A stretch of 64,000 bases of DNA from positions 248,001 to 312,000 of the forward strand of contig NIVC01000440.1 of assembly GCA_002269645.1 (NCBI GenBank), written 5' to 3'. Position 1 is the first letter of the stretch. Each line of letters begins with the position of its first letter. Below the pieces are notes generated by a model that saw only the letters and a program-made list of their open reading frames with translations, had not been told where the DNA came from and did no database searches. Position numbers and translations under genes: made by a program. Origin of the DNA: Macrostomum lignano (Eukaryota). This document shows, piece after piece, positions 2,841-51,289 of this stretch.

Positions 2841-4264
<1,424 letters not shown>

Positions 4265-13980: not shown

Positions 13981-14286
13981 GGTTATTAAGCTCAGCTAGC
14001 TCAGCCCTGCATTTTTTATAAATTAAACTTTTTAATAGATAAAGCCATCAAAAGCCATCTTTTTTATGCTCATTTTGTTTTATCAGCAGATGGATTCACT
14101 TCGTTTATTTTAAACTCTCAATATGGGGTTGATTCTTGCGCTCTCGATGCCGCAACTTGCCACCAAAATCACTGATCAAAATTGTCTCTTTTCATGTTGT
14201 TCGCTTTCCAGCTCTTAAGCAATGCTGAGATCAGTAGGTAGTTAGCTGGTTCGCAAGATTCGGTCGCTCCGACCAGTTCCAGTTAA

Positions 14287-14674
14287 TTAACAGCTGTAGC
14301 AGGGACAACGTTCGGCCACATAATTGCTGTAATAATTTTGTTCGCTGACGCAGTACCTGCGGTAGCGACCGCCTTGATGGATGCAGTGGATTGTACAGAT
14401 GATTTTCCAGGTGTTTCTGGGGTCTGAAAAAAACACAAATAGTTTACTGGGCATTGGTTATAGAAAGAGTTAGAAAGAATTTTGAAACATTTGCATCTTT
14501 AGTCCGACTCGAAAAACGGTTCAACTTACACACGACATTGCTGGGCAGGCGTCTCTTGTTGGCCAGGTGGTCGCTAGCGGCCGGATCAATCAGCGGATGG
14601 TTCCTGCTGATAGGTGAGGCACTAGAAGCAGCAAAGCCCAACAGACAGACGGTAGCAAGCAGCAGCAGATTCAT
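14287..14674 (-). CDS. Defensin-like cysteine-rich prepropeptide 1 (exons 14674-14530 and 14423-14287), 93 aa
   Basis: MNLLLLATVCLLGFAASSA / SPISRNHPLIDPAASDHLAN-KRR / LPSNVVYPRNTWKIICTIHCIHQGGRYRRYCVSEQNYYSNYVAERCPCYSC. Consensus GTAAGT donor and TTTTCAG acceptor, phase 1, with AATAAA downstream at about 14104-14109. Confidence 0.8.
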
Positions 14675-14890
14675 GCTAGCTATATCTTTCGAATTGAGAG
14701 GTTGCAGTTTTGCCAAGTTATCTTTGCGAGTGTTGGCTCCGCTCTCCCGGATCTGCCGCTCCGCTTAAAAACGCAGCCGGGAATCACGCGCCTGCCAAGT
14801 GCTGCGTCGGCGTTGCCAATCGTCGGCGCTGAAGCTGGATCGAGTTGGAAGCTCAAACAAACCTACACCAATTTCCATGAAGGTACCAGC

Positions 14891-15237
14891 ATGGAATTGG
14901 CGCCAAAATGGAAGCTTGCGATTGTAATTGGCGCCGCCTTCGCGGGTGCTCTTCTACAATCGCGCGTAAACGGTAGTTATAAGCAATCAAAAACGCCTAC
15001 GTATCTTCAGCTGCAGAAGCAGAGTGAGGGAGCGATCGGATGCCTGCATCAGCTTAATTTGAAGATTAAAGAGTCGGCTCGTCCTTAGAAAATTCTAGAA
15101 CAGTGTTTACACAGGCAAGCTGCAGCTTTACTTGTAAACAAGAGTCACCTCGCCCCTCTGGGCCAAGGCGGCCCTGTGAAAGTAAATGCATGCACAGAGC
15201 TGCTTTCCAGTGGTCAAGACGGATGTCCGGGACGTGA
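14891..15237 (+). CDS. Candidate small secreted peptide with two CxxxC motifs (exons 14891-14972 and 15104-15237), about 71 aa
   Basis: Signal-like MELAPKWKLAIVIGAAFAGALLQSRVN ends at a phase-1 GT. The in-phase acceptor at 15103 gives VFTQASCSFTCKQESPRPSGPRRPCESKCMHRAAFQWSRRMSGT*. The acceptor choice is uncertain. Confidence 0.3.
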
Positions 15238-15499
15238 GCCGCGCTTTCCTGCTGCAAGAGCCAAAAGGACCAAACGAAGCACCGCATCATCAAGCAAGGG
15301 ACAACTGGCAACCCCGTGGAATCCACTGACTTCACTGACGGGTCCCAAATCAACTCTGCGTCTGGCTGTGGCTATCGCCGGAGTCCGGGGGGATCTGTGG
15401 CAAACTTCCCAATGTTCTTCTAACTGCACATTGAACACAATCAATGACGTAAGAGTCAGATGCGTTTACCGCTGAGATACTCCACGGTAACGGTATAAA

Positions 15500-16090
15500 G
15501 GGTAAAGACTGTGATGACAATCCGGGGACTGCTATTAGAATTCGCCCAAATGGATTTCGAGCTAATTGGAACTCAAGAAAACATAGTTTTGCATTATGGA
15601 GTTCAACGGGCATCAGGTGCCAAAGATCTTTTTTGCCTGTGCCCAAGGCAGTGGAAATCTTGTCTGATCAGATGTTTTGCTCCACAGAGCTTAAATTGTC
15701 TGCAACACCTGGATCAACTTTGACCGAAAGTGAATTTTCTGACCTAAAATTTTTAACAATCCTCGTGTGTTTATCCAAAAGCACATTCACAAATTCGTTT
15801 CCATAACTATTTCCAAACAGAAAACACAGAAAACTGCTAAAACTGATTGCGTCCATCTCAATGAATCAGTTCTTGTCCTCCCCTTTCTCTGCGTGGGGAA
15901 AACTAAAAGGCACCTGCACACCAGAATCAGGGAGCACTGGCTCAATTAACCGTTGGCAATCCAAACTCACCTCTTAGAATGCAGCAGTTGCTCCAATTGT
16001 AAACCTGAGGAATGCTTCAAAGACATTGACCATTGCTTATTTGACTGCATTAAATCTCAGTCCCCCAGCCTCAACACTCAACATCAAAAT
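15500..16090 (+). mobile_element. Degenerate Penelope-like element 3' part (RT thumb + GIY-YIG endonuclease remnant)
   Basis: Frame-broken motifs CPRQWKSCLIRCF, NNPRVFIQKHIHKF, VGKTKRHLHTRIREH and IKSQSPSLNTQ are typical of Penelope-like elements. Confidence 0.7.
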
Positions 16091-17843
16091 AGTAGTGGCG
16101 CTGGTCATGTTCTCGGCGTGTTCTAAGACATTCTGTGTAGTTGGCTGCAACCCAAACCACCCGTCCCTGTAGACCTTGCCTTTCGATCACGGACTAAATT
16201 TACATAAATGTCATCACATTTATTCACTCGCAACCTACTCGTTAGTAATTAAATAAACCTCAACATGCACATTGTAGTGCGACACGCTTGGTTTCATTAA
16301 ACCGATGTTGATTTTCGGTTTCCTCTTCTTGCTGCTTGCCAAGCGAGCTAGCTTACAAGATCACAGATAATATTCTTACTTATCTACTAGTGCCCTAAAT
16401 TTAGTCGCTCGAATTCTAGCATCGCGACAATGCAGCAGAATCTTTTTGTTCAGCGTTTTCTGACTTTGATGGATCTCTCCATCAAACTATATACTTAGCT
16501 TACAGCAACAGTCAATAGAAGCGAGTAAATTGGAGTCAAAAAGACAACTTTTGACTCCAATTTGGAGTCAAAGACAAACAAAGTCGACAATTTTTTTCAA
16601 CTGAATGAAAAGCAGAAAAACAAGCACATGACAAACGACTGTTTCAAATGCAGATTTTTAAAAGACTCGCTATGCGTAGTGTCGCTTTGCGTCTATTCAG
16701 TGAGTGAGGAGCCATTGGGACAGAACAACAACTCTCAGAATAGAGAATAATAGATTTTTGTCGGGGGGCTGCTAGCCAGACAATGGTGGATCCTGCATCC
16801 TGGATGCTGAAACAGAAGACATACGACATACGTATCTTAACTACAGAGCTGAAAGCAGAGACAATGCAGTAACCAATTAAATGACTGATTGTGCCGAACT
16901 CAAATGCAGCGCTGGAAGCGCCTAACGGATCAACACAGTTTTTCCTCACAAAGCAAAACAATTCAAAGACTCGCTTTCTTGATCTGCACGGCATCTGTGA
17001 AGTCATTAATTAAATGTAAATAAATTTTAGTCTCCCACTTTCTACCATTAATTAAAAAATGTAAATAAATTTTAGTCTATGGTCCACATCGACATTAATA
17101 CGAACTGTAGTTTTTTGATCCCATAAAGAGAGGGAAGCTTGCTCGTCCAAACTCCAACCACAATAAGCGAAGCTACATTGGAAGAATGTGCGGATGCTTA
17201 TCAAGAGCCTGTCCAGACCGACAGCGCACTACGTGTGCAGGCTGCTCCGTCAAAGAAGATGAAAAGTGACCATTGGCGGCAGTCGCAATCTGATTGATAT
17301 TCTTTCTGAGTGACGTTACTGTGTAGGCCTGGTATTAATTGATTAACATGCGATTTCTTTGTTGAACAGTTTTTGATGTTTTTCTACCTAACATCAAAAA
17401 ATAAAATTTACCCTTTGTTATTGTTCAAATTGCCGTTGCGTGTTTATATCCAAAATGACATTACCACGCATCCCACGCGCGTGTTATTGTCACCAAAAGT
17501 GCATAGCAATGATATATTCTTCTGCACTATTTTTGAGTGTTAATGTCATTACCAGAAGAATATATCATTGTCAAGCGTGTTGAAGCGGCAGGACAACCAA
17601 ATGCTGATGGGGCTAATGATCGAAGCAGATCAGCACAGCACGTACAGAAATCGTTAAAAGTGTCACGCCTCATTCAACAGAAATCTGCAAGCATTCACGC
17701 CAAATTGAAAAGCTGGAAACTGCAGCATAAATAAAAGTCACTCCAGACACAAAATCTGCGTCTCCAAAAAAATTCTGGCCTTCCGAGAGAAAAATCAGTC
17801 TATTCGTCATAACCTAGAGGAAAGTCATCAATTGCCAGGAGAA

Positions 17844-18946
17844 ATGACTGCGGTTCTCACCTCTTGCTGCTGGCCTTCACTACTTGTGCTTTGCCTTCTC
17901 TGCCACCCGTCTCTGCCTCGTCAGTCTGGAGCTGGAAGCCGGTTCGCGGTGACCTCGCCGAGTACAGGGTGCTGTCAACGTTTAAGACTAACAGCAAGTC
18001 GTCTGTCTTAGCAAATCTCAGGCGGCGAAGGCTCATGTGGTGTCTTACGACACTGCATCGGGCGACTGCACCCTGCTGGAGTGTGACCGTGGCAGCAGAG
18101 ACAACTGCAGAAAGTGCCGGCACGATGGAGATCCGAGTTTACCGATACTCTGGGTGAGTTGGGCGTTTCTGTGAATTACCTTGATGCGCTGTGTGAGTGA
18201 GCTGCGTATCTGTCAGTTGCCTTCCTTTGCCATGGTGGCACTCTGGAAGCACCAGATAGCTTACATCTGTTCCATACCCTCCAATCGCAGGTCGATCAAG
18301 GAGCCGGACAGCTGCTGGCAGACCTTCCTACACAGAGTCGACCGCGACTCCGTCAGCTTCAACCGGAACTGGTCGGAGTACGCGAGCAGATTCGGTCAGG
18401 GCGAGAGTCGAAACTACTGGATGGGTCTGGAGCAGCTCCACCAGCTCACTAATTGACTGGAGTGTGGAGAGTCCGCTGGGAGTTCAGCGACTGGGATGAC
18501 AACTGGTACCTGGGCTGAGATGATCCCTTCTCTGTTGGCCCAGCTCTGTTGGCCCAGCGACCGACAAGTACAGGTGCTCGATGGGACCGCTGAACACGAG
18601 CAGGTCAAATTTCGGACAACGAACCACATCAAATCATGTAATGAACATGCAGTTCAGCATTATCGATTCTGATAACGATAATTGGTCCTCTGGAAGCTGC
18701 GCTGATGGTCCTGCTGGTGGTTCAACTGGTGCTCCTTGATGGTGCCCCAGTACAAAATACCTGTACCCACCGCTTTGGCTTTTAATTTCTATTTCATTCT
18801 TTTTCCTATCTTTTTCCAAAATGTTTAAAATAACAGGGTTTTTTTAAAAGTGCCTACGACACAGTGGGTATCTACTGCCTAACACCAACCCCGTGCTTCG
18901 AGTTTACTACTCCATGAAGAGCTTCGAGGGCATGATTCGGCAGTGA
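17844..18946 (+). pseudogene. Secreted PAN-like + fibrinogen-related-domain (FReD) gene, multiply disabled
   Basis: FReD motifs WQTFLHRVDRDSVSFNRNWSEYASRFG, YWMGLEQLHQLT, RVRWEFSDWD, SVGPATDKYR, MQFSIIDSDNDNWSSGSCA and YSMKSFEGMIRQ*. Frameshifts near 17862, 18005 and after 18450, internal stops, and a duplicated ctctgttggcccag near 18530-18557. Confidence 0.75.
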
Positions 18947-19773
18947 CCGCGTGAAACAACGGAAAATTTTTCGGAACTATTCAACTCTTAACAGTGATAT
19001 ATAGACGGAAGTTATTATATTGCAATTCTTTGAACAACCATTTTACTATCTCTTAAAAAAAGCTTAGCCTTTTAGTGGGCGTCCCCCTCCCCCCGATATT
19101 CGCAATGGTAAAACTGGAAGCTTCACTGGGTCGTTCTATGAATAAATGCAGGGGGTCCACCAAGTTGTCGTAGTGGTTTAAGTCCTAACAAATTTCCCAC
19201 AGTAGTCACAAGTTGCTATTACTAAGTTACCTACTTGACCTTATCTCACCTCTGTTGCCTCAAACTACGAATTTCTTACTAACTGACCGTGTATAGGCTA
19301 TCGTCAGTACGATTTACCCTGGTAGCTTCAGTACCCGAGCGGCAAGACCAAGGACGACTTAAGTAGCTAGGATGGGAAACCTTGTTTCTTAGAAAAATTT
19401 TGAAGGCTGCAGGTTTTTCCAAAAAAATCACTACGGAGATAGGAAGTTTTCATTTTTTCAGCACAAAAATTGTTATTGCTTTTGATAGGAGGCAGATCCA
19501 GTGTTCATCTTTTGATATGTTGTGCCTTTCTTATTGCTCTATCGATATTCATAAAGCTTTTCGATCAAAAAATTAGGATTCTATGTTAATTTTTTACTCT
19601 ACGTACATTTTTCTTCTTATTTATTCCCTTGGCCTTGGCCTTGGGCCTTCGTATAATCTAGAAGAGCTTGATCTTTTCTTCTAGTATTAGTTTAACATGA
19701 TCTAGAACGTGAATTAGGTGACCAATAGGGGACTAAATAAAAGTTCAAATTCCATCTATCACATTTGCTCTAG

Positions 19774-19887
19774 CGGCTATCCTGTAGTTTCGCACGTTAA
19801 ATTATTACCCCCACCCCCCACCACCCTTGAATAGAGGGCGAAATAATTCCGTAAAATAATTTAACGTGCGAAACTACAGGATAGCCG
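19774..19887. mobile_element. Tiny palindromic MITE-like element with 33-bp TIRs
   Basis: cggctatcctgtagtttcgcacgttaaattatt and its exact reverse complement, flanked on both sides by ctctag (19768-19773 and 19888-19893). Confidence 0.7.
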
Positions 19888-20532
19888 CTCTAGCATATTA
19901 TAGTGTGTTATAGGCATGGCATTATGAATAGTGTAAGACCAAAATAGCCACAATATTGAACAGTAGCAATGCAGGGCACAGGGCTGGGGGGGGCAGAGGC
20001 CAGAGGGGGCTGCTTCCCCGGGTGACCACACCCTCCCATCCCTCCATGGGGTGACCTACCATAGGCCTAGTTTTTTGTACAAGCTTAGGCCTATAATTAG
20101 CATTTTTGTAAGATTTTTCATGCAATGTGTTAGCACTAGGCTACTCTAATTCTAGAAAATTTGCTAGAGAAGGGGGTGACCACCTACCGTACCCCCTACT
20201 TCCTCTTATAATTGGAGGTGCTGTGTAGTGTAGTGCTGCCACTGATATTGAATCTTTTGTTGCTATTATATCTATCTTGACTATCTATTGACTATTCTCT
20301 ATCTTTAATTTGCAACTTAATATAATAGGGGGCCTAGGTCTAGCTATTGTGATATTAATTAAGTATACATTTTAATCATAGTATAAATACCATACAATTA
20401 TTGAAATAATATAAAATATTATTTTATATTTTTCTTTTTTAATTTTATGCTAGGTAGGTCTAGTAATAATAGGCCTATTACCTAACAGTTAGGCTAACTA
20501 AAATAAGTTTAGCCTAATATGAAGCTTGAGGC

Positions 20533-21894
20533 GGAAGGCCTTATAGTTTCAATAGATAGAATGGCAGCAAAGATTCTGCACTGCGTTGCACATGTATTTA
20601 TATGATTATAACAAACAGTATGAGATTGAAGGGCCAAGGAAGATGCGAAAAGATGACGTGGCATGATTGGCTACGCCAACCTCCGGCTTAGCAAGCCGGC
20701 TAGCTTGGCACGCACCCACCCCACCTTAGCTAGACAGAGGCGGGGGGGTTTCCAGTGTGGCTGCACTGGTGCTGCCGGTCGTGTAGTCTGGCTGCCACCC
20801 AGCTCCCTCCAGCACCAAGCTAGGCCCCAAACGTCGGGTGGTAGCCAAGGCTGTTAGAGTGCCGAGGAGCGGGCACCAAAAGCTAAGTACCAAAGACCAC
20901 GGAGCTGCTGAGGAGTGGGCGCCGAAGATCGCAGGGGCACAAGGCGGGCGCCAAAGGCGGCAAGGGCGCAAGGCGGGCGCCGAAGGTGGCAGGGCGCCGA
21001 GCGGGCGCCGATAGCAACAGGGCGCTGATGGTAGCAGGGCGCCAAGCAGGCGCCAGGCGGGCGCCGATGGCAGCAGGTCACGCCAATGGCAGCAGGGCGC
21101 TAGGCGGGCGCCAAAAGTAGCAGGTTGCCAAGCGGGCGCCGAAGGCAGCAGGGTGCCAGGCAGGCGCTGAAGGCAATAGCAGGGTGCCAGGCGGGCACCA
21201 AAGGCAGCAGCAAGGGTGCCAGGCGGGCGAAGAAGGCAGCAGCAGGGGTGCACGGCCGGACCACACCCGAGGCAATTGATAGTTAGTTGTCGCTGTGAGC
21301 TGGGTCGATGCTCCTGCATTGAGGCTGGGGATGTTAGGCTAGCAGCAGCGGTGCAAACCTAAAATTTGCTGCAGCATGTGGCGCTGGTTGGTCCAATGCG
21401 GGGGCTGAAAGGTGAGACCCCAGGAGCTATTGGGGGGCGGGCTGACTGGGCCAATTTGTGCTGCGGGGTACTGCTGTGGCTGCTAGGCTGCTGTGCTGCT
21501 GTGCTGCAGAGCTGTTGTGCTACTGTTGCGGTTGGCCAAGGCGGTTGGCTGCTAGGACCGCACAGGGCCGGCAAGGTAGGCCCAATGTTCCATGCTGGGA
21601 GTTGGGCTCACCAATGAGATGGAAGGCCTTTTAGTTTCAATAGATAGAATGGCAGCGAAGATTCTGCACTGCATTGCGTGTGTATTTATATGATTATAAC
21701 AAACAGTGCGAGATTGAGGGGCCAAGGGAGGTGCAAAAAGGTGGTGTGGCGTGATTGGCAATGGCTATGCCAACCCCCCTGGCTTAGCAAGCCGGCTAGC
21801 TTGGCACGCACCCACCCCACCTCAGCTAGACAGAGGTGGGGGGGTTTCCAGTGCAGCTGCACTGGTGCTGCTGGTCGCGTAGTCTGGCTGCCAC
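20533..21894. repeat. Two diverged direct repeats of about 265-275 bp (20533-20798 and 21621-21894) enclosing a GC-rich gggcgcc-motif tract
   Basis: Both copies run from ggaaggcctt...tagtttcaatagatagaatggcagc to ...agtctggctgccac. Confidence 0.8.
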
Positions 21895-22806
21895 AAGCTA
21901 CCAGTATTTTTAGTTTAATAATTCAAGTAACAATTAATTAATTTAATTATAAGCAGAAGCTACAAAAAAACTTGGAATATATCTTGGCCTAGGCTAGGTT
22001 TCATTTGCTTTATTTAATAGATAAATATCTGCAATAAAAGCTTAAGAGAATGCTTTTTGTTTGGTTAGGGCCTAATCCAGTTTTATTATAGTAGTACCTA
22101 TCTAAGATTTGTAGATCTAGGCCAGATACTATACCCAATTTCAATATTTATCATTATCATTACTAATAAGATATAGGCCCCCTATAGAAATCAGTGTTGG
22201 GCACCATTAATGAAAATCTAAACTTCCATTAATGGCAAAATAGTTGACTATAGTCTTGACTGTTTAACTAGTTTTAATGAATTTTTTCTATTTCTCTAAA
22301 TTAGTACACTCAATGGTTTAATACCAGGTACAATGCAAAATTGGATCCAAGTTCCAAGTTCAAGATGCAATTTGGAAGTCAGGATGTTGCATAGCATCCC
22401 TATTGCTAACCTTAGCCTAGGTTTCTTTTTTCTGGCACTAGTAGGATGCTAAATTGCATTAAGGTCTAACTTGAAGACACAATTTTGAAAGTCAAAATGC
22501 TATAGCATCCCTCTTGCACAAAAAATAAACTTATGTATTTAAAAATTGTTTTGTTGTAAATTACAGCAAGTTTAGGCCCTAATATATTATATATTAAAAT
22601 TTGTTAATGTCATTAATCTTCCTATTCTTATCATTTATAGGATAATTAAAAATTCACAATTGTAAAATTCTCAACTACTATATTTTTTATAATTGTGGCC
22701 ACAAGAGCAGTTGCTATCTGTAAGCATATGCAGTGAAAATTTCTGCAGAATAATCATCCATACATGTTTGCAGAAAATTGCATATAACCAACCAATAAGC
22801 AAATTA

Positions 22807-25609
22807 ATGGCTCTGCACCGACTTAGCTCAGCTTGCAATAGAATGTTTCTATCAGCATCAGTAGTGCAGACTGCCAGCGGACTACGCAGCCTGTCATCCG
22901 CAGGCGGACTGGCTGACAAATTCACCAAGGCGCAGTCAGCTCTGCAGCGGCTCACTGAGGATCCCGGCAATGCTGCCAAGCTGAAGATCTACAGCCTGTA
23001 TAAGCAGGCCACGGAGGGCAAGTGCACCAAGCCGAAGCCGGGATTCACCGATTTCGTTGGCCGAGCCAAATGGGACGCCTGGAGCGGCCTTGGGGACATG
23101 ACCAAGGATCAGGCTATGCAGCAGTACATTGACCTGGTGGAGTCCATGGGCGGCAAGCTGGATGCTCCCGATACTACTGCCGATACTACTAATCCCGCCG
23201 ATTCTAATACTGCGTCTGCTGATTATAAGGTACAAGCTTATTGATTGTGAAATATTTATTAAAATAACTGCATTTTTTGTTTTGCTGAAGATTTTCCTGT
23301 CTGAAGATTTTCTAATGACATTTCTCTGCAAGATTAGCTGTCATGCGCTCACTGATAGGCAGCTTGCTCTGTAGCTGGCGCCCCTCTGTAGCTGGCGCCC
23401 CTCTGTAGCTGGCGCCCCCTCTGTATCTGGCGCCCCTCTGTAGCTGGCGCCCCTCTGTAGCTGGCGCCCCTCTGTAGCTGGCGCCCCTCTGTAGCTGGCG
23501 CCCCTCTGTAGCTGGCGCCCCCTCTGTATCTGGCGCCCCTCTGTAGCTGGCGCCCCCTCTGTAGCTGGTGCCCCTTCTGTAGATGGCGCCCCTCTGTAGC
23601 TGGCGCCCCTCTGTAGCTGGCGCCCCCTCTGTAGCTGGCGCCCCTCTGTAGCTGGCGCCCCCTCTGTAGCTGGCGCCCCTCTGTAGCTGGCGCCCCCTCT
23701 GTATCTGGCGCCCCTCTGTAGCTGGCGCCCCCTCTGTAGCTGGTGCCCCTTCTGTAGCTGGCGCCCCTCTGTAGCTGGCGCCCCTCTGTAGCTGGCGCCC
23801 CCTCTTTATCTGGCGCCCCTCTGTAGCTGGCGCCCCTCTGTAGCTGGCGCCCCTCTGTAGCTGGCGCCCCTCTGTAGCTGGCGCCCCCTCTGTATCTGGC
23901 GCCCCTCTGTAGCTGGCGCCCCTCTGTAGCTGGCGCCCCTCTGTAGCTGGCGCCCCTCTGTAGCTGGCGCCCCCTCTGTATCTGGCGCCCCTCTGTAGCT
24001 GGCGCCCCTCTGTAGCTGGCGCCCCTCTGTAGCTGGCGCCCCTCTGTAGCTGGCGCCCCCTCTGTATCTGGCGCCCCTCTGTAGCTGGCGCCCCCTCTGT
24101 AGCTGGCGCCCCTCTGTAGCTGGCGCCCCCTCTGTAGCTGGCGCCCCCTCTGTAGTTGGCGCCCCTTCTGTAGATGGCGCCCCCTCTGTAGCTGGCGCCC
24201 CTCTGTAGTTGGCGCCCCCTCTGTAGCTGGTGCCCCTTCTGTAGATGGCGCCCCCTCTGTAGCTGGCGCCTTCTCTGTAGCTGGCGCCCCCTCTGTAGCT
24301 GGCGCCCCTTCTGTAGATGGCGCCCCCTCTGTAGCTGGCGCCCCTTCTGTAGATGGCGCCCCTCTGTAGCTGGCGCCCCCTCTGTAGATGGCGCCCCCTC
24401 TGTAGCTGGTGCCCCTTCTGTAGATGGCGCCCCCTCTGTAGCTGGCGCCTTCTCTGTAGCTGGCGCCCCCTCTGTAGCTGGCGCCCCTTCTGTAGATGGC
24501 GCCCCCTCTGTAGCTGGCGCCCCTTCTGTAGATGGCGCCCCCTCTGTAGCTGGCGCCCCCCTCTGTAGATGGCGCCCCCTCTGTAGCTGGTGCCCCTTCT
24601 GTAGATGGCGCCCCCTCTGTAGCTGGCGCCTTCTCTGTAGCTGGCGCCCCCTCTGTAGCTGGCGCCCCTTCTGTAGATGGCGCCCCCTCTGTAGCTGGCG
24701 CCCCTTCTGTAGATGGCGCCCCCTCTGTAGCTGGCGCCCCCCTCTGTAGCTGGCGGCCCCTCTGTAGCTGGTGCCCCTTTAGTTGGCGCTCCTGGATATA
24801 GGTGGATTAAGTTTTAACTACTTTAACTACTTCTAGCTACTAGTTGTAACAGTAAATTTAAGAACTATAAAAAAGGGTCCGAGCGAGGTCTGTTTTTACA
24901 TACGACATAATTATGTTTGCATGCACTCAAGGTTCAAATATCCGAATCTCAGTTACTGCAGCAATTCTCATTCGCATTGGTTTAAAAGACAATAAATGAA
25001 ACGTTGCATTTTTAGCACTAAAAGTTTGTTTTGTCTTTATTTTTTTGCCGTTACTTAAAACCAAGACCTAACATTAACAACATCTAAGGTCAATTGAGAG
25101 GATTCCAATATTTACAATATATAAAGATTGTTAAATTTTCATTTTGCTACTGTAAGTAGACGATTGCGCAGAAACTTAATTATGTATTTTTATTTACTTT
25201 CAGGAAGCTCTAGTATCCATCTCGCCTAGCGGGGTGCTTTGGTTCACCCTGAATCGGCCAGCCAAGAAGAATGCCATCTCAACCGATCTGTATGCTGAAT
25301 GGTCCAAAGCGATGGAGCAGGCCGCCGCTGACGACAAGGTCAAGGCTATGGTCATCACCGGTGCCGGGGAGTATTTCAGCTCCGGCAACGATTTGTCCAG
25401 CTTCACCAATTTAAAGCCCGGCGTCACCATGGAGCAGATGGCCGCCGATGGTAACGCCATTTTGCGTCGCTTTGTTGCGGCATTTATCGACTTCCCCAAG
25501 CCGTTGATTGCGCTGGTTAATGGGCCCGCGGTGGGCATCTCTGTGTCCACGCTGGGCCTGTACGATCAGGTGAGTCTTTTGAGAACTGGGCGCATTGGTT
25601 GGAAATGAG

Positions 25610-25662
<53 letters not shown>

Positions 25663-25678
25663 CGATAGATAGATAGGC

Positions 25679-25741
<63 letters not shown>

Positions 25742-25774
25742 CAGATAGATAGATAGATCGATAGATAGATAGGC

Positions 25775-25821
<47 letters not shown>

Positions 25822-27825
25822 CAGATAGATCGATAGACAGATAGATAGATAGATAGATAGATAGATGCAGACAGGTAGGTAGATAGTTAAGCTTTAACAA
25901 TAAAGTCAATTAACTTCCTAACTCCCTAATCGCAGGTGTTCGCCTCCGACTCAGCCACATTCCACATGCCATTCTCCTCGCTGGGCCAAACTCCCGAAGG
26001 CTGCTCCTCCTACACCCTGCCCCGCATCATGGGCCTGTCGGCTGCTGCCTCCCTGGTCATGTTCAACCGGAAGATCTCCGCCCAGGAGGCGCTGTCCTGC
26101 GGCCTCGTTAGCCGGGTCTTCCCGGCTGCCTCCTTCGCCGCCGAGGCCGGCGCCGCAGTTGAAGAGATTGCCGCCCTGCCCAGACAGGTGAGCGCCGGCC
26201 ATCTGCTAATTTTTGCTTAACCGATTTGTTCACTGGATGCACTGATCTCATTAATTCAATTTTCTGCTGCGGAGAGCTAGCTAGCGTAAAATTGTTTTCA
26301 GATTTTTAGAAGCCTACTGTTGTAACTTTTCTCTCTCCCTTCCTCTCCTATCTCCCTCTCTCCCTTCTCTCTTATCTCCCTCTCTCCCTTTCTCTCATAT
26401 CTCCCTTCTCTCTTATCTCCCTCTCTCCCTTCTCTCTTATCTCCCTCTCTCCCTTTCTCTCATATCTCCCTTCTCTCTTATCTCCCTCTCTCCCTTCTCT
26501 CTTATCTCCCTCTCTCCCTTTCTCTCATATCTCCCTTCTCTCTTATCTCCCTCTCTCCCTTCTCTCTTATCTCCCTCTCTCCCTTTCTCTCATATCTCCC
26601 TTCTCTCTTATCTCCCTCTCTCCCTTCTCTCTTATCTCCCTCTCTCCCTTTCTCTCATATCTCCCTTCTCTCTTATCTCCCTCTCTCCCTTCTCTCTTAT
26701 CTCCCTCTCTCCCTTTCTCTCATATCTCCCTTCTCTCTTATCTCCCTCTCTCCCTTCTCTCTTATCTCCCTCTCTCCCTTTCTCTCATATCTCCCTTCTC
26801 TCTTATCTCCCTCTCTCCCTTCTCTCTTATCTCCCTCTCTCCCTTTCTCTCATATCTCCCTTCTCTCTTATCTCCCTCTCTCCCTTCTCTCTTATCTCCC
26901 TCTCTCCCTTTCTCTCATATCTCCCTCTCTCCCTTCCTCTCCTATCTCCTTCTCTCCCTTCCTCTCCTATCTCCCTCTCTCCCTTCTCTCTTATCTCCCT
27001 CTCTCCCTTTCTCTCATATCTCCCTCTCTCCCTTTCTCTCATATCTCCCTCTCTCTCTCTCTCTCTCGCCTATCTCCCTCTCTCCCTTCTCTCTTATCTC
27101 CCTCTCTCCCTTTCTCTCATATCTCCTCTCTCCCTTCCTCTCCTATCTCCTTCTCTCCCTTCTCTCTTATCTCCCTCTCTCCCTTCCTCTCCTATCTCCC
27201 TCTCTCCCTTCCTCTCCTCTCTCCCTCTCTCCCTCTCTCTCCTATCTCCCTCTCTCCCTCTCTCTCCTATCTCCCTCTCTCCCTTCCTCTCCTATCTCCC
27301 TCTCTCCCTTCTCTCTTATCTCCCTCTCTCCCTTTCTCTCTTATCTCCCTCTCTCCCTTCTCTCTTATCTCCCTCTCTCCTTTTCTCTCATATCTCCCTC
27401 TCTCCCTTCCTCTCCTATCTCCTTCTCTCCCTTCTCTCTTATCTCCCTCTCTCCCTTCCTCTCCTATCTCCCTCTCTCCCTCTCTCTCCTATCTCCCTCT
27501 CTCCCTTCCTCTCCTATCTCCCTCTCTCCCTTCTCTCTTATCTCCCTCTCTCCCTTTCTCTCTTATCTCCCTCTCTCCCTTCTCTCTTATCTCCCTCTGT
27601 CCCTTTCTCTCTTATCTCCCTCTCCTTTCGTCTCCCATCTGCCTCTCTCCCTCTTCTATCTCTTTGCAGACGCTAATTTACGCCAAGCAGCTGTTGCGAG
27701 AGCCAATCAGAGCGGAGCTGCACGCCACTAACGAACGGGAGTGCAACCGGCTGCAGGAGCGCTGGATATCCGAGGACTGCTTCAATGCTGTGGCGAAATT
27801 TTTCTCGCGAAAGTCTAAGCTTTGA
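22807..27825 (+). CDS. ECI2: Enoyl-CoA delta isomerase 2 (ACBP + crotonase domains), 4 exons (22807-23229, 25204-25569, 25936-26187, 27670-27825)
   Basis: ACBP motifs [14 protein letters not shown] and GRAKWDAW; crotonase motifs [26 protein letters not shown] and [16 protein letters not shown]-terminal mitochondrial-like leader, C-terminal PTS1 -SKL, and three phase-0 GT-AG introns. Confidence 0.95.
23370..24790. repeat. 18/19-bp satellite (ctctgtagctggcgcccc), ECI2 intron 1
   Basis: Direct inspection. Confidence 0.95.
25609..25866. repeat. (GATA)n microsatellite, ECI2 intron 2
   Basis: Direct inspection. Confidence 0.97.
26329..27660. repeat. Polypyrimidine CT-rich tract with a 65-bp higher-order period in its first half, ECI2 intron 3
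   Basis: catat recurs at 26396, 26461 and 26526. Confidence 0.92.
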
Positions 27826-28255
27826 TGCGTTGGGAGTGACAAGCAGTCGCTGGGGTGTGAACTTCATTAAATTAAAGCAATTGATTTATCATGGTAATTT
27901 TGAAAAAAAAGAATTCGAGCATATGGATACTAGTAATGAGTGTATTGTTTTGTTATATTTTTACTAGTAGCAAGTAGCTTTTTTAATTTCCATAATCATT
28001 TCTGCTTGATCTTCTGGTTTTTTTTGTAGCGCGAACGCGAATATTACATAAAAAACACTTTAGAATGAAATAATATAAACTGATTTGTGCCTGATTTCTC
28101 TGTGAATTAGATATTAAGAAGAATCATAAATGAAAAATATTTTTTCCTCTTTGTTTTTAGGAACACGTTTAAATTTTTTTTCAGGCATTATTTCGGGAAA
28201 TCCTTGGGAAACCAGTCGGCTTATGTTAAAGACTGAGCCACACAAGCTGCTCTCT

Positions 28256-30546
28256 CTATGAAATATGATTCCAATTTATGTTGTCCAGTTCCATCTGAAG
28301 TGCCAACATTGTTGGACTGGTGTGGTTCGCTAGCTGGTTAAATAGCTGCTCAGCGCAATGTCGCACTGACTCAGAAACACCAATGTTGCTGCTGTTGCCG
28401 CAGCTGCGACTCGGCGAGCAATCTGGCAACAGGCTAATAATGAGCTTCTGCTCAGCAACCCACGCTTCAATGTCAGTCTGCGACCATTTATCACCGGCTG
28501 CAGTTTTCTGGCACCAGAGTCGGGTTGAATCGATGCAACTAAGCGTCGAATCACTGTGTTGCACTGCCTGACTAGCCGCTCTGATGCTGACTGCCTTGAG
28601 TACAGAGTTCGTCACTTGATCGCTTGACCTTGAGTCTATTTGGCATTTACTAGTATCCGTCTTGACAGCTTTATCGAGCGCCCTGTAAGCCATCAACGTG
28701 GCCAACTGCAATGACGAGTCAAGAAACGGCGCATAGAAGTGCACAGGAAGTTGAAATTCTTTTCCGCTAGATCTACGAGTAGATGGAAAAGTCGTTCCTA
28801 AAGCCGATTTGGTGAACAGTTGCAGAGCCTCGCGATCTTCTGTGCCACCCCGAGCAGCCATGACCGTCAGCATCGCCCTCGTGTGCCTGATAGTCGACAG
28901 AAGATCCAGTAAAAAATCTGCTTGGTCGTTTAAACTTAGGCCGTCGTAGAGATTGGCTAGAAGAGTTTCTGAAGGTACACCGCTGGCAGTCTTCAGGTTG
29001 AGTCCTGCTGGCAGACGGTGCACGAAAGCCCGACTCGCAACTGCCGGCATCGCTAATCGGACAGCTCGAGCGCAGGATTCGACCTGCGTCAGTCGGCCCT
29101 TGTCGCTGCTGCCCAGCAGAAAGCTTCTCAATCGTCCCGCGCCCTCGATGAATGCTAGACCGACCAACGTGTCGGGGTCCTGGGCTGTCAGCAGTCTCAG
29201 ACGTTGCCGCATAACTTCCAGTCGTCCGCGTACGCTAATAAATCCGAAACGGCCGTCCACGCTTACTAAAGTTCCGGTCCTGCTTCCGCTTGGTTGGGAC
29301 GCTTTGACCGCTGCTGGCAGTTGGTCCAGTTGGAAAGCTTTCCAACCACGTTCGCCACTCGGAAATAAGTCTACCAGGTCTGACAGCAGCACCGGTTTTG
29401 TGACGTCTGCATAGTGCGGCGCGTTTTTGGTCAAATTAAAAATACGAGCGTACATATTAATGATGCTCCTATAATTATTGCTGTTTTCCCACTTACTGCC
29501 TTCATCATCTCGCCGTTCTAATTGATTGAGCTGCAGTCTCAGACTGACAATTCGATCGGCTATGACTCCTGGCAGGCCGCGATCGACTCGTTCAAAAGCT
29601 GATGCTGCTTCTATTCGATACGCCCAAGCGCTTGCCATTTAAAAACAAAGACAGCAAATGTAAATGCGTGTATCGCCAGGCAGATTATAAAGTTAAACGC
29701 GACATTAACGAAATCCGAAATTTCTTACTTATCATCTACATCACTAGCATAAGTCGACATCTCAGACGCTTGCAGTCTTAGCGGCACAGTTATGTAATCG
29801 GCAGCTGGGTAAGTTGCGAGTTCGACTCCCGCCGGTAGGCCCAATCCCGCCAGGTAGCCTAACAGTCGCTCGGACGCTTCACCATTCCTAGGCTTAGTGA
29901 ATCGAGTGCTCAGCAGGCCGGTGTGCCTTCCTAGTAGGCGAGCCAGAGCCGGCTCCACCGCGATTGCCTCTCGTCCGAACAGGTCTCTGGCGGGGCTGGA
30001 CCTCATGCATGACAGCGCCAGGCTTGAGGCGGCTCGCATCCAACTCTTGGCGCTAATTGAAGGCCCCGGTCTAACCAGCGCTTCAATTAGCGCGCTAGCG
30101 GCTTGCTGTTGAACCAAGCGCAACCGATCAACGCTGCCGTCTTTAAATCCGGTGCCTTCAACGCTCCACTGTAGGCTAGCGACTCGCTGGAAACTGCGAC
30201 ACACTTGCAGCGGCTCGTACTGGCTGCAGTTGTCAGCCCCAGCGAACCCCTTGAATGATTTTTGATCGACGACATGCAAGGTACTTTCATTAGAGGTCTC
30301 TGACTCCTTGCGACAGTCGATCCTGCCGATGTAAAATGCCGAGAGAGCCGCGGCTGCAGCCGACAGGAGCACCGTCAGAATGGCTCCCAGTAGCAGCAGA
30401 CAGGCTGTCAGTTTTGAACGCCTACGACGAACTGGGAGTCGTTGAATATCGTCATCGGATTGACTTAGTCTAATCGAGACGTTGTTATCCTCATCTTGAT
30501 TTGCTTCGTTTCTGGTGTGTAACGTTGGCGTCCTGAAAATTGACAT
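28256..30546 (-). CDS. Divergent neprilysin/M13-like type II membrane protein without HExxH, 2 exons (30546-29729 and 29630-28256), 730 aa
   Basis: The two long ORFs join in frame via a 98-nt GTAAGA...AG phase-2 intron. It has a short cytosolic tail, a basic RRRRSK motif, a TM segment, a cysteine/tryptophan pair at the M13 N-terminal motif position (VCRSFQRVASLQW), LSCM and C-terminal RLWC. The length is typical of M13 proteins. Confidence 0.55.
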
Positions 30547-31057
30547 AGTTTAAGCTACTAATAGACGCATCGAAAGTATCAGTTGTTTTGTTTTATAATC
30601 AGCTTTGAGGCGATAGAAGCTGATTGGCTCTGCTTTAGATTCGCCCCAAATCAAAGCCTCGGTGACTGCTGAATATTTTGAATTTTAACGAATCTGGTAT
30701 TCAGCCTTTAGGCACGAGACAGCCTCCCGCATCTTGGTGACTGTGCAGTTAATTTAAATATAAATTGCATCGTCATGGCTATACATATATTCCCATCAGC
30801 GCGTTTTGCTTGCTAAAAAATTGAAGTAGCTGGAGAGCTTTTTTTACGGAAAATGCGTGCATGCCTTTGTTAGAAATATTAATCTAAGGCTTTTCGTCAG
30901 AAAAATAATTTCCTGTTTTTAATTACTTCGTTATTGATCCTGTCTTCCAAGTCCTCAGTCACAAAATTACCTTGGTTGTGACTCGGAATTTAATTAAAGA
31001 ATGCGTTTCACTTTATTCAATAGTAATTTTTATCGATTTTCCATGTTGATAACCTAA

Positions 31058-31242
31058 GGGGGGGCCGTAGCCCAGCGGTCTAGCGCAGGCTCTGGTGTGC
31101 CAGCAGGCTCGATTCCAAGTGCAGTCACATTAATTTGGGGCTGAATTGGAATCTCGGCTTGGCTCTGCTCGTGCAATTAACGGCCTTGAGAGCCAACCCC
31201 CCAAGGCGCAGTGAAGTGTACATGCCTAACGATAAAATAAAG
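31058..31242 (+). mobile_element. tRNA-derived SINE (family 2)
   Basis: A-box-like gtagcccagcggtctag, B-box-like ggctcgattcc, a non-tRNA body and an A-rich end (gataaaataaag). Confidence 0.6.
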
Positions 31243-32028
31243 TTAGGGCCGCTGTACACTCCTGTGTGAGTGTGTGCCTGCGTACGTATCCGCGCGCTTG
31301 TGTGCCTGCTCAGGGGAGTCGGCGGAATGGGCAGTAATGCCTCTCGCCGGTTGTGTGCCTATGTCGCTTAAAGTGCGCCAGGGTGCACACAACCCCCTGC
31401 CTCTAATAAAAAAATGTTGATAGCCGGGGGGGAGGGGCAGAGCTGCTCCGTTCAAACGCGGCTGAATCTCGCTCTTAAGTCCTAGGCTCGATTCCAAGCA
31501 CCCCAAAAGCAGTTAATGGGACTCATGCAAAAAAATGGTTTTTCCTTCTCAACCCTTAAGCACTGTACGAGTACAACCTCTATGAGTTCGTGTTTACGTA
31601 CGTTTCCGTGTGCACACGTGTGCTCAGGGTCAGCGGACCGATGTTTGCATGGCAGCCTTGACTAGCGGTAGTGTCATAGATAAAGGAGTCCTTGCTTCGA
31701 GAAGACAGTCCATGGACAGCGCAAGTTGTCAAACTAGATCGATTAATTTAGAAGCCAGAAAGTTCCTAACAGAAATCCAATCGATATTTATTCAACCCAA
31801 TTTCATAGTGCACTTAATTCTGTGAAAACTCCATTAAAAAGAAGAATCGAATGCATATTTCTCTCTCTTGCTAAAAAATTGACTGTTCTATCTATGCTCT
31901 TTTGAACTTCGGGAACTTCCTGCTAACGCTTAGGTGTAGAATTATTTTTTGCTGCTCAATGCAACAGTTAAATTATTTAAATTTAGATTATAGATATACA
32001 CTTGTTCCTGTAACATTCATCTACTTAT

Positions 32029-32337
32029 ATGAGTAGCGTGGTTAACATTTTGTTGTTCTGCTTTGGTGCTATGCTCTTACAGTACCGGTAAATGCATGTA
32101 TGCAGTATACTATATAGTTAGTTGGCTTTTAGCCACCCAGTTGCAGCACTTTCGGTCAAACAGCTTACAAACAGTGGTAATAATTTACTAATTTTATTAC
32201 CTGCCATACACTTTGGACAAGCCTGTAGAGCAATGCCGAAAATCAAGAATTCGTGTCCATATCGTTGTCAGCTGCACCTGATGTACAGTATGTACTCGGA
32301 TGTACAAAATTACACAAGATGTACAGTGGCCCTCTGA
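32029..32337 (+). CDS. Possible small secreted protein (exons 32029-32087 and 32133-32337), about 87 aa
   Basis: Signal-like MSSVVNILLFCFGAMLLQYR(HPVAA), a 45-nt phase-2 GT-AG intron that joins in frame, and 4 downstream Cys including CPYRC. No family recognised. Confidence 0.25.
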
Positions 32338-33498
32338 CTTTCTTTCCGTGAGGAAGTCTACTAGAAATCATAATGTGCTGTGTCTGGGTTGGCTCAAATG
32401 AGCAAAGATCGCTACGACAAGCTCTAGGCCGATTGTCGGTCTAGGCACTTAATTAAAGAAATTAATTTCGCCACAGGTGTATAGCCGAACTCGGGTACTT
32501 TTCACACAATGGTCGAAGAGAAACATTGTCGATCGGGAAAGTCAATCGGACGACAGCGTGTAGGAGGTAACAAGGGAAAGCTCGTGCTCATTTACATCTT
32601 AAGATATCAAGCTTTAGACTGTTGAGCCATCGGTTTGGAGGTTTAATCAAAATATTTTCAAGACTCGAGTGCACTCAAATCAACAGGTACACAGCTCATG
32701 CACTGATTACTTTGCCGAGCTCATTTGGAGGCTTTTGAATCGAAAGAACACATAATGCTTCAAAGTAAACCGCGGGTGAAAAATTAATTAAAGGCTGTTT
32801 TTCTACACCGAATGCATTTTTTACTGTTTACTATTTCCGTAATGCTTCTTGCTGTTGCCCAAAAAAAGAAGATAAATGTCGTGCCGAATATCTAATATCT
32901 CCTTCAGCACTATTTTATAATTTTTTTATCTGCATGACGCTTCAGTTTACACCAGTATCTAATATTAGATATGGAATTTTCTACTGTCAAAATCAGGGTC
33001 AGAGTAAACCCGATCTGCGGCAATGGCAAGCCTGCTGCCTCCAAAATTTTTCCAAGAAACGTAGTTTCCCTCTTATTTGAGCTACGAGCTAATAAGGCCT
33101 TGTTTGGTGCATGCACTACTAGAGCCAAAAGCAGCAGTAGTACATTTCGCCAAGTTAAGGATGCTTACCATTTTTTTCTGCTACGAGCGTATTAAGAAAA
33201 TATTTTGGTGATTCCTGATTTAATCCAGCCTAAGCTCGTACCGAATATGGAAAATCGCGAGCTCAACGAGGCCCCAATTCTTGAGTAAGCTCAATTTTTG
33301 ACTGTCAACTACCCTGGGGGTTTTAAAAATTACTTGACTCGATTTGTTTAATGTTTCCAATGCTATCTATACGACGTACATGCACTTCTGCAGTATGCTA
33401 CATGCGTTTTACTCGTAGATTTGAAAGAAATTCATTTTAGAATACATCGTAGTATGTGCATCAAAACACGGACGTAGTCAAGAATTTTTATCGTTAAG

Positions 33499-33717
33499 GG
33501 GGCGCCAGCACCAGGGGCGCCAACACCAGGGCCGCCAGCACCAGGGGCTTTAGCACCAAGGGCGCCAGCACCAGGGCCGCCAGCACCAGGGTCGCCAGCA
33601 CCAGGGGCTTTAGCACCAAGGGCGCCAGCACCAGGGTCACCAGCACCAGGGTCGCCATGCAGCACCAGGGTCGCCAGCACCAGGGGTCACCAGCACCGCA
33701 CCCTGGCTACGCCACTG
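33499..33717. mobile_element. MITE remnant: right TIR plus a 15-bp GGCGCC-core tandem array
   Basis: ctggctacgccactg (33703-33717) differs by one base from the TIR of the 5843-6254 element and is preceded by ggggcgccagcacca repeats. Confidence 0.65.
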
Positions 33718-33994
33718 CATCAGAGCTGCCTGAATCAATATAAATGTAGTAGAAAGCTAATGTTGATCTGGATTCTTTTTTTATTGCAGGACTGTTCCAT
33801 ACAAATTTGATCCAAGAACACTAAGAGCAATTTAATTCAATTAATCAAAAAAAGGCTATTCTAATTGCCTTGGATGACTCTAGTTAGATAGTTGCGTTTC
33901 GTGAAAGATTCTCACAATCTCGCGAATCCAAGCAATGAGTGTCTCATCTCTGGCAGCCTAATCCGGATTGGCCCGCTACTGATGTGGACTTCAT

Positions 33995-34002
33995 TATAAA
34001 TA
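33995..34002 (+). promoter_or_regulatory. TATA box upstream of defensin-like peptide 2
   Basis: TATAAATA lies 102 nt before the ATG at 34104, with a reverse CCAAT (gattgg) at about 33966. Confidence 0.45.
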
Positions 34003-34103
34003 CTCGCATAGGTGTGACTCTGCGTCCGTACTGCAGCTGACATACTCAAAGATTTTTCAGTAATATTTTCCCTGTCTCAATCAGTTTCGATACTAATTAG
34101 CCA

Positions 34104-34604
34104 ATGCATTCGTCCACTACAATACTGGCAGCTTGCCTTGTGCTGGTGCTAATCAGCGTTGACTATCAGGGTGGCGGAGTTAGCGCCACACCTTTGGCTA
34201 ATAAACCTGGCGAGATACAAACTCACCAAGTCAACAAAAGAGTTTTCTGTAAGTAATAAAGCCAACTGGTTTCAGATTTTAATTTTGCCAGGCAGTCGAT
34301 CGATAAGCTAAGCCAACAACCCCACGCCGCGTGCTAAATGTACATTTAGCTGAGAATGTACAGATTGGAGGGTAGGCAGAAATTCTCTGCTATCTCACCC
34401 ACCTCCCCACTGCGCGCTGAATGTACATTGAATGTACACTCGGAACTTTAAATGCCAATTTCTACCTACTTTCCAGATTTTCACACGGTTTTTCGCTACT
34501 GCATCCGCCGTTGTCGTCAGCACTTTGGCGTCACCGCCGGCTGCGTTGGATACCTGAACATGCCTTTAGGCACCTGCGACTGCGTCTGTTCCAACTATCC
34601 TTGA
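34104..34604 (+). CDS. Defensin-like cysteine-rich prepropeptide 2 (exons 34104-34248 and 34477-34604), 90 aa
   Basis: MHSSTTILAACLVLVLISVDYQGGGVSA / TPLANKPGEIQTHQVN-KR / VFYFHTVFRYCIRRCRQHFGVTAGCVGYLNMPLGTCDCVCSNYP. GTAAGT donor, TTCCAG acceptor, phase 1, with ATTAAA downstream near 34651. Confidence 0.8.
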
Positions 34605-35178
34605 CCTTGAGTCGCAGCCACGGCTGGCCATGACAACTAAAATTAATATAATTAAACATCAAATTCGCTAATTTCAAGTTGCGATGGAAATTACACAACA
34701 ACGAAGTTGACTGTGCTGTTTGCAGTCTGTGATTATAAGAAAATTGAAATGTTGAGATTGAGAATGCCGTATTCAAGCAGAATTTTGCAACTTTTCGTTA
34801 CCTTTCAATTCGAAACAGAAGAACTAAATATACGAGCGCACAATCACAATTACACAAATAACAAATTTCAGAGGGACCCTAAGTCCCAAATTAGGCAAGC
34901 CGGCTCAAAAGCAAATGAATACATTACTAGGTGTCTCTTTTTTACTTTAAAACAAAAAATGCATTTCGCAGAAATTTTTTAGCATAAACTACGAGCGTAA
35001 ATCTGATAGATAAAGTTAGGTTTCAGATTTTTTGGCATTTAAACTTGCTGCGTCTCAATTTTTAGGCTTCAGAACAGAACTGCGAATGAGGCGGCATGTA
35101 GCTGTTTTGCTCAGGGTTGAATTCACAAAAAAGGAAAATGCTTAACTGAGGACTGGCAGTTAAATGAAATAAGGCCGG

Positions 35179-50036: not shown

Positions 50037-51289
<1,253 letters not shown>

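Follow-up and report, generated by a model that had tools for sequence, protein, structure and literature searches.

A 64,000-nucleotide (nt) stretch of the Macrostomum lignano genome, positions 248001 to 312000 of contig C440 (hereafter the window, in whose own numbering positions are given), carries two small two-exon genes, A (BOX15_Mlig033545g3) and B (BOX15_Mlig034330g3). Both encode short precursors with a hydrophobic N terminus, then a propiece and an NKR sequence, followed by a domain with six cysteine (Cys) residues. We describe here the two genes, the family to which they belong and the relation of that family to known Cys-rich peptides.

Gene A is encoded on the minus strand. Its first coding exon (14530..14674, 145 nt) encodes a signal peptide, a propiece, the sequence NKR(R), seven more residues and the first base of a tyrosine (Tyr) codon. 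It is followed by a phase 1 intron of 106 nt (14424..14529, GTAAGT...TTTTTTTCAG, ending in CAG), whose position is common to the A-type paralogs described below, and by a second coding exon (14287..14423, stop codon included) that contains the entire six-Cys domain, PRNTWKIICTIHCIHQGGRYRRYCVSEQNYYSNYVAERCPCYSC. In silico splicing yields a product of 93 residues, MNLLLLATVCLLGFAASSASPISRNHPLIDPAASDHLANKR/RLPSNVV-Y-PRNTWKIICTIHCIHQGGRYRRYCVSEQNYYSNYVAERCPCYSC. A candidate poly(A) signal, AATAAA, recognized by its motif, lies 177 nt past the stop codon (14104..14109, minus strand).

Gene B, located on the plus strand, is organized in the same manner. The first coding exon (34104..34248), again of 145 nt, encodes a signal peptide, a propiece, NKR and the residues VF before it reaches the first base of a Tyr codon, such that the distance from KR to the split codon is two residues instead of seven in gene A. 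The intron (34249..34476, GTAAGT...CTTTCCAG, ending in CAG) is also in phase 1, and its length of 228 nt is identical in all three near-identical copies of the gene. The second coding exon with its stop codon (34477..34604) contains the entire six-Cys domain, FHTVFRYCIRRCRQHFGVTAGCVGYLNMPLGTCDCVCSNYP, and the spliced product has 90 residues, MHSSTTILAACLVLVLISVDYQGGGVSATPLANKPGEIQTHQVNKR/VF-Y-FHTVFRYCIRRCRQHFGVTAGCVGYLNMPLGTCDCVCSNYP. Two further plus-strand motifs flank the gene, a TATA-like box (TATAAA, 33995..34000) 109 nt upstream of the ATG and a variant poly(A) signal (ATTAAA, 34651..34656) 46 nt past the stop codon; both are assigned as motifs only. The Tyr codon is split as T|AC in gene A and T|AT in gene B.

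The six Cys residues form the frame C-x3-C-x10-C-x14-C-x-C-x2-C in A and C-x3-C-x9-C-x10-C-x-C-x-C in B, and a Val follows the third Cys in both. When the window was translated in six frames, a strict pattern for this frame matched at exactly two sites, namely genes A and B, and 100 block shuffles produced no match; random placement of six Cys in 41 to 52 residues would fit it with p ~1e-4, and the pattern exceeds chance expectation. The features reported for both genes by a first-pass annotation of the window, i.e., the 145-nt first exon with its signal, propiece and KR, the phase 1 intron that splits a Tyr codon a few codons past KR, and the second-exon frame with its CV at the third Cys, were all recovered when coordinates and sequences were checked.

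The spliced models are identical to two M. lignano proteins in GenBank, PAA82951.1 for A and PAA82953.1 for B. The annotation of the Mlig_3_7 assembly (764 Mb) is a genome-guided transcriptome built from RNA sequencing (RNA-seq) data with StringTie and TACO, using poly(A) and trans-splicing data (PMC5730564). Moreover, the database entries of several paralogs (P0003, P0008, P0010 and P0011) start 5′ of the ATG, in translated 5′ untranslated region, which gives them the look of transcript-derived models. Because of this identity and of the entries that reach into the 5′ untranslated region, we take both genes to be transcribed and spliced as modeled, as had been proposed, on the basis of transcript-derived annotation rather than of reads.

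To delineate the family, the 764.4-Mb M. lignano assembly (5269 contigs) was searched in six frames with A, B and three paralogs as queries, and the exons were then modeled. Seven paralog groups were identified, with 21 copies genome-wide, which bears out the proposal that A and B belong to a multigene family. Three groups are of the A type, namely A, A2 (contigs C713 and C70) and A3 (C3175, C1370, C1723 and C1003), and four are of the B type, namely B, B2 (C1493, C1419 and C725), B3 (C942, C1236 and C1234) and B4 (C1124, C1672 and C1717). Each group comprises two to four near-identical copies, as expected in the neopolyploid genome of M. lignano. The open reading frame, the GT-AG intron and the six Cys were intact in all 21 copies. 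The GenBank entries P0007, P0009 and P0010 are identical to spliced paralog models, and P0012 equals the B4 model in length. Single-sequence genome searches with A, B and the three paralogs revealed no further paralog groups.

All seven groups share one organization: a signal peptide, a propiece, KR, zero to seven residues, a phase 1 intron and a single exon for the Cys domain. The intron is located 6 to 10 codons upstream of the first Cys in every group, and exactly 8 codons upstream in the four B-type groups. The split codon is Tyr in five groups (A, A2, A3, B and B4) and Thr in the other two (B2 and B3). In contrast, the first coding exons measure 127, 142, 145, 145, 148, 157 and 169 nt, all ending in phase 1. 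The equal first exons of A and B are therefore coincidental, and what is conserved is the phase and position of the intron; of the shared blueprint proposed for the two genes, this part extends to the whole family, whereas the identity in exon length does not. The predicted mature peptides have 44 to 52 residues, net charges of +1 to +7 and isoelectric points of 7.8 to 9.5, and all are cationic.

Other sequences came up around these searches. The weak genome matches L069 to L073, L089, L016 to L018, L037 and L048 were rejected as non-members after their sequences were read. Four of them, L069 to L072 (contigs C4722, C2682, C2609 and C173), represent a dispersed repeat encoding ‘...AKIAYSWAFICSKYP...’, which faintly resembles the N-terminal motif YSWTFVC of A3; it has stop codons and no Cys frame, and was ruled out as a family member. 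In the window itself, an (AGAC)n microsatellite at 50286-50706, whose minus-strand translation is (CLSV)n, falsely matches a loose CxxxC...CxC pattern, which calls for caution in pattern-based genome scans for the six-Cys family. Among the true members, the B4 precursor (L010, G000:C1124:228192-231311) terminates in ...AAFNGWGR. Its C-terminal Gly with a basic residue behind it has the form of a classic amidation signal, which none of the other six groups shows.

We compared the sequences for traces of selection. Among recent copies, the ratio of non-synonymous to synonymous differences (pN/pS) was ~0.24 in the mature exon (7 non-synonymous and 8 synonymous differences) and ~1.2 in the prepro exon (18 and 5, respectively). 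Between paralog groups, the ratio of the corresponding substitution rates (dN/dS) was mostly 0.2 to 0.6 and approached 1 only in comparisons with B4, with dS often saturated. The non-synonymous divergence of the mature part was about twice that of the prepro part in the A-types, and the reverse was observed in the B-types. No signal of positive selection was obtained by dN/dS, with saturated synonymous sites between paralogs and tiny counts among recent copies. Because dN/dS values mostly lie below 1, the rapid diversification attributed to the family in the first-pass annotation is unproven, and the data are compatible with ancient duplications, after which purifying selection acted on the scaffold. 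In the A-type paralogs (gene A versus L025 and L029), dS was 0.54 to 0.61 in the prepro exon and 0.70 to 2.55 in the mature exon, from small counts; the low prepro values could be due to constraint at the nucleotide level or to gene conversion affecting exon 1.

These data also bear on the possibility that the reading frames of A and B are chance or non-functional, i.e., no genes at all or decaying pseudogenes. They are indeed very short, match no Pfam family and have no homologue outside the species. However, frames of that kind would hardly correspond to transcript-derived proteins identical to the models, nor retain their splice sites and all six Cys in every one of the 21 copies, nor show a pN/pS of ~0.24 in the mature exon among recent copies, and the Cys pattern did not arise in shuffled sequence. 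We consider this explanation extremely improbable.

The domains of A and B were modeled with AlphaFold2 from separate alignments, each containing its own subfamily only, so that agreement between the two predicted folds is not circular. The best B model had a mean predicted local distance difference test (pLDDT) score of 83, with four of five models between 77 and 83. It consists of a helix (residues 2-16) that carries C8 and C12 and of a β-hairpin (strands 22-27 and 32-37) that carries C22, C33, C35 and C37, the layout of the cysteine-stabilized α/β (CSαβ) fold. Foldseek comparison with the PDB gave mytilin B (2EEM) and the plant defensin AtD90 as the best whole-length matches among small proteins; the model aligned with mytilin B with template-modeling (TM) scores of 0.48/0.54, a root mean square deviation of 2.8 Å and 28% identity. 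The A model similarly starts with a helix (residues 2-15) that carries C9 and C13, followed by short helical turns only. Its best Foldseek matches were all CSαβ peptides, namely AtLURE1.2 (TM 0.55/0.64) and the scorpion peptides P01 and tamapin, at E-values of 3.5 to 10. The CxxxC motif is thus placed in an α-helix in both predictions, as in CSαβ peptides.

Several features of the predictions speak against such a fold. The A model is unstable, the best pLDDT of 86 being followed by values of 71, 71, 54 and 50, and DSSP assigns it no β-strand. In addition, every Foldseek E-value for A and B exceeded 0.5, those of the CSαβ matches being at least 0.6 with probabilities of at most 0.18, and the matches are suggestive only. 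Non-significant E-values are usual for queries of 40 residues. Taken together, the models make a CSαβ fold probable for the B-types and slightly favored for the A-types, and the predicted structures are best interpreted in this way, in agreement with the defensin-like nature initially ascribed to the peptides.

Whether A-type and B-type peptides form one family was addressed at several levels. Gene products A and B had been called almost unalignable, and BLASTP indeed detected no similarity between them (E = 4). The comparison of A-type and B-type profiles by hhalign was not significant (E = 0.18); that of the B-type profile with A3 aligned all six Cys with 33% identity but was not significant either (P = 0.18), and in a column-shuffle test on the 31 non-Cys columns of the seven-sequence alignment, similarity exceeded the shuffled controls only weakly (z = 1.5, p = 0.07). 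All four results count against a single family, and homology of the two types is not demonstrable by sequence. No DNA similarity was found between the A and B loci, introns and flanks included.

The two types might then be unrelated Cys-rich families with convergent spacing that are neighbors by chance, the A-types having a mostly helical fold such as that of ShKT domains. The lack of significant similarity is in line with this scenario, as is the A model, which is devoid of strands, has only short helices past its main helix and varies over its five versions. Phase 1 introns are generally enriched after signal peptides, and intron phase alone is therefore weak evidence of kinship. Furthermore, UniProt automatically names A ‘ShKT domain-containing protein’, not defensin, which also weighs against the defensin assignment discussed below. 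The ShKT domain (PS51670, PF01549) resembles A in that its ~40 residues include six Cys, one of them at the extreme C terminus. Nevertheless, the typical ShKT spacing ends in C-x3-C-x2-C, which does not fit the C-x3-C...C-x-C-x2-C frame of A, no Pfam match to PF01549 was obtained for A, and no ShK structure was present among its fold matches, at the top of which stood CSαβ peptides. An ShKT identity of gene A was thus rejected, and its label looks like a weak profile match.

More generally, convergence accounts poorly for what the two types share. All their six Cys can be aligned with three short gaps, and the C-terminal frame of A3 is C-x-C-x-C, exactly as in the B-types. The two types also share an unusual departure from the canonical CSαβ array, with no Cys N-terminal to CxxxC and an extra Cys just past CxC. 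The intron precedes the first Cys by 6 to 10 codons throughout, and it splits a Tyr codon in groups of both types. Lastly, genes A and B are 19.4 kb apart and divergently transcribed, with one unrelated single-copy gene between them, and all three near-identical contigs show this arrangement. The probability of finding any A-type/B-type pair within 20 kb by random placement is ~0.002, an estimate that considers seven loci over one-third of the assembly. We therefore regard chance resemblance as improbable and the common descent of the two types, based on the aligned Cys and their odd array, the intron position with its Tyr split codon and the adjacency, as likely.

A scheme can be proposed for the biogenesis of the peptides. 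The precursor would enter the secretory pathway and its signal peptide would be removed. A convertase of the kexin/furin type would then cut after the invariant KR, and the A-types may lose more N-terminal residues. By analogy with CSαβ peptides, the CxxxC of the helix would be linked by Cys1-Cys4 and Cys2-Cys5 bridges to the CxC in the last strand. Because the peptides lack the Cys that normally precedes the helix, Cys3 must pair with the extra Cys past CxC, and the third bridge would thus be non-canonical and relocated, Cys3-Cys6, linking the start of the hairpin to the C terminus. The resulting cationic peptide would be released as a secreted antimicrobial effector. The processing at KR, the disulfide pairing, the CSαβ fold of A, the common descent of A- and B-types and the antimicrobial function are all steps that we infer. 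The explanation that we favor, with modest confidence, is that of a family of secreted six-Cys peptides restricted to M. lignano, with a CSαβ-like scaffold and a likely role as host-defense effectors.

Regarding function, antimicrobial host defense is the most likely single role, but this putative assignment remains tentative. No mention of the gene identifiers of A and B was found in the full texts searched and in the supplements of four M. lignano transcriptome papers, which is a point against it. The family and its scaffold may well hold while the peptides serve another purpose, as toxin-like modulators of ion channels directed against predators, or as signaling or reproductive peptides of the seminal fluid or of glands. 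The structural neighbors of A are a signaling peptide, AtLURE1.2, and two K+-channel toxins, P01 and tamapin, and the ending of B4, GWGR, might be an amidation signal as found in neuropeptides and toxins. A predatory venom is unlikely, however, in a diatom grazer such as M. lignano. The restriction of the family to M. lignano in a library of 1.84 billion proteins is compatible with such roles; rapid evolution and lineage restriction are also typical of Macrostomum reproduction-related genes (PMC7336406). Conversely, the gene identifiers were absent from the supplements of an RNA-seq study of Macrostomum reproduction-related genes, in a look-up that was incomplete, and the cationic charge and multicopy nature of the family fit antimicrobial peptides equally well. 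A six-Cys CSαβ sequence does not by itself separate toxins from antimicrobial peptides (PMC5116183), and channel toxins and signaling peptides use this scaffold equally. A non-antimicrobial role therefore weighs substantially, although we consider it rather unlikely.

The remainder of the window contains other genes and repeats. Between genes A and B, two open frames are found on the minus strand, at 28256-29638 (460 residues) and 29725-30549 (274 residues), neither of which has a Pfam domain. The former occurs once per contig on all three near-identical contigs, with 97 to 100% identity, and has distant relatives (~40%) within frames of ~800 residues on three other contigs; it qualifies as a genuine gene rather than a repeat. 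Exons of two conserved genes are located on the plus strand near the ends of the window, one at 3191-3790 with a match to the DPCD family (E = 8e-15) and the other at 63246-63854 with a match to an acyltransferase family (PF01553, E = 3e-5). Minisatellite arrays with a common GGCGCC(C) core are present at 5891-6066, 23367-24789, 33499-33697, 35207-35790 and 38559-39918. Read by eye, the 21-nt unit of the 35207-35790 array (CAAGAGACAGGGGACGCCCAC) nearly matches the 20-nt unit of the 38559-39918 array (TCTCTTGGTGGGCGCCCCTG) when the latter is reverse-complemented, indicating that these two arrays are inverted copies of one satellite flanking ~2.8 kb. Finally, a 1.3-kb CT-rich array with periods of 24 and 65 nt and 82 to 87% matches, at 26331-27663, accounts for the extreme strand skews of the composition profile (GC skew -0.66, AT skew -0.56).

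To our knowledge, hardly any secreted immune effector is known from free-living flatworms. If the peptides are CSαβ defensin-like effectors, the Macrostomorpha would join the taxa that possess this scaffold, and the third disulfide would prove relocatable while the helix-hairpin core is kept. The family would also provide seven small, easily synthesized candidates for antimicrobial and ion-channel testing, and RNA interference and transgenesis are available in M. lignano (PMC5730564). Annotation based on Pfam misses such families entirely, and automatic PROSITE labels divide this one into ‘defensin’ and ‘ShKT’ proteins.

We finally compared the family with known systems. A full hidden Markov model search of 1.84 billion representative proteins returned five clusters, all from M. 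lignano, and a word-indexed search of 5.8 billion proteins returned M. lignano proteins only. A metagenome scan with the B-type alignment retrieved one contig (L090) with a chance match to ‘HFGVTAGC’ and no Cys frame, which was discarded. In the searched databases, the family is restricted to M. lignano. UniProt names B (A0A267GAC6 and A0A267EP56) and B2 ‘Invertebrate defensins family profile / INVERT_DEFENSINS domain-containing protein’, which suggests a match to PROSITE PS51378; near-identical UniProt copies, including one of B, are named ‘Uncharacterized’, suggesting that the scores are borderline. A literature search found no publication on this six-Cys family or on defensin-type peptides of Macrostomum. 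The family can thus be called undescribed, as initially proposed, inasmuch as it has no Pfam match and no paper, but not with respect to UniProt, whose automatic labels already designate B and B2 as defensins and A as an ShKT protein.

The defensin affiliation suggested by the B-type labels has to be set against a number of negative results. None of the seven members had a true Pfam match, those to YacG and Peptidase_C3G being spurious, and Defensin_2 matched none of them at E ≤ 10. A genome-wide scan with Defensin_2 (PF01097) yielded nothing above threshold and nothing at the A and B loci. Searches of PDB sequences with B and with the B-type and A-type profiles returned no match. The canonical CSαβ array is C...CxxxC...GxC...CxC, in which the Cys N-terminal to the helix bonds with the fourth Cys (PMC6435467, PMC5234102), and the flatworm peptides deviate from it in that no member has a Cys between KR and CxxxC, nor a strict GXC before the hairpin Cys. 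B, B2 and B3 have G/Q-C at this site, with F-G five residues earlier in all B-types, and the A-types have (Y/R)-C. All members have an extra Cys one or two residues past CxC. These features argue against a conventional defensin.

The CSαβ defensin genes of scorpions, mollusks and arthropods have a single, unsplit exon for the mature peptide, and the upstream intron is strictly in phase 1 (PMC6435467), an organization found in all seven paralog groups. Like the six-Cys invertebrate defensins (PS51378, PF01097), the flatworm peptides appear as small, cationic, secreted peptides with a CxxxC...CxC core. They differ from them by a longer hairpin loop (10 to 14 residues rather than 4 to 9) and by the Cys and GxC features described above. 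Among the positions of a reference CSαβ array, six-Cys defensins use C2, C3, C4, C6, C8 and C9, and eight-Cys peptides of mollusks and nematodes add C5 and C10 (PMC5116183). Judging from their sequences, the six Cys of the flatworm peptides would correspond to C3, C4, one of C5 to C7, C8, C9 and C10, a set that lacks C2.

The extra Cys shortly past CxC is shared with the eight-Cys peptides MGD-1, myticins and ASABF, in which it corresponds to ‘C10’ (PMC5116183). These peptides keep the Cys of the N-terminal loop and three canonical bridges, to which they add a fourth, whereas the flatworm peptides would form three only. The A-type ending C-x-C-x2-C is spaced as the endings of MGD-1 and myticin. 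ASABF-6Cys-alpha offers a precedent for a six-Cys array in which the missing Cys are not a bonded pair (PMC5116183), although the positions that it lacks are not those missing in the flatworm peptides. In addition, four Schistosoma sequences have an array like that of long-chain toxins (PMC5116183), showing that CSαβ-like sequences are not unprecedented in Platyhelminthes. The Foldseek neighbors of the A model, P01, tamapin and AtLURE1.2, are CSαβ peptides of similar size (target-normalized TM 0.44 to 0.64), but they have canonical Cys arrays and only 16 to 20% identity to A; their functions are channel block for the first two and pollen-tube attraction for the third.

The closest parallel to the B-types is mytilin B of Mytilus (2EEM), a cationic CSαβ antimicrobial peptide of another spiralian that is likewise derived from a prepropeptide. 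Its sequence was verified before the comparison. The B-type profile aligned with it by hhalign over 30 columns, with 37% identity and five Cys matched (P = 0.007); this test was chosen after the fold match, and it is therefore supportive but not independent. The elements that coincide in this alignment are the helical C-x3-C, the Cys that precedes ‘GY’ where the hairpin begins, and the C-x-C-x-C of the last strand. However, mytilin has eight Cys, in the array C-x3-C-x3-C-x4-C-x11-C-x-C-x-C-x2-C, which the B-types do not reproduce. Six of these eight positions are aligned, five as Cys with Cys and one as Phe against Cys. The B-types lack two Cys of mytilin, namely the last one and the third of the helix, in place of which they have the invariant Phe of ‘HFG’. 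Relatedness is suggestive but not statistically secure. Pfam and PDB sequence searches give no link.

In the published pairing of mytilin, the two Cys that the B-types do not keep belong to different disulfides, so that their left-over partners in the B-types must pair with each other as a rewired third bridge. As an evolutionary proposal, the flatworm peptides might have branched off, with rewired disulfides, from a mytilin-like CSαβ ancestor common to the spiralians; one Cys would have been lost from each of two ancestral bridges, and the orphan partners would now be paired. We deem this origin decidedly unlikely. If it were true, the peptides would show a CSαβ connectivity not yet described, the ‘mussel-specific’ mytilins would become a spiralian-wide lineage, and the family would provide the first defensin-type effectors genetically tractable in a transgenic flatworm model. 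Irrespective of this particular ancestry, the family is best read as a Cys-shifted variant of the CSαβ/cis-defensin superfamily. The novel system anticipated by the first-pass annotation is in this respect a variant within a known superfamily, in which the combination of a phase 1 intron and a single mature exon had already been described (PMC6435467).

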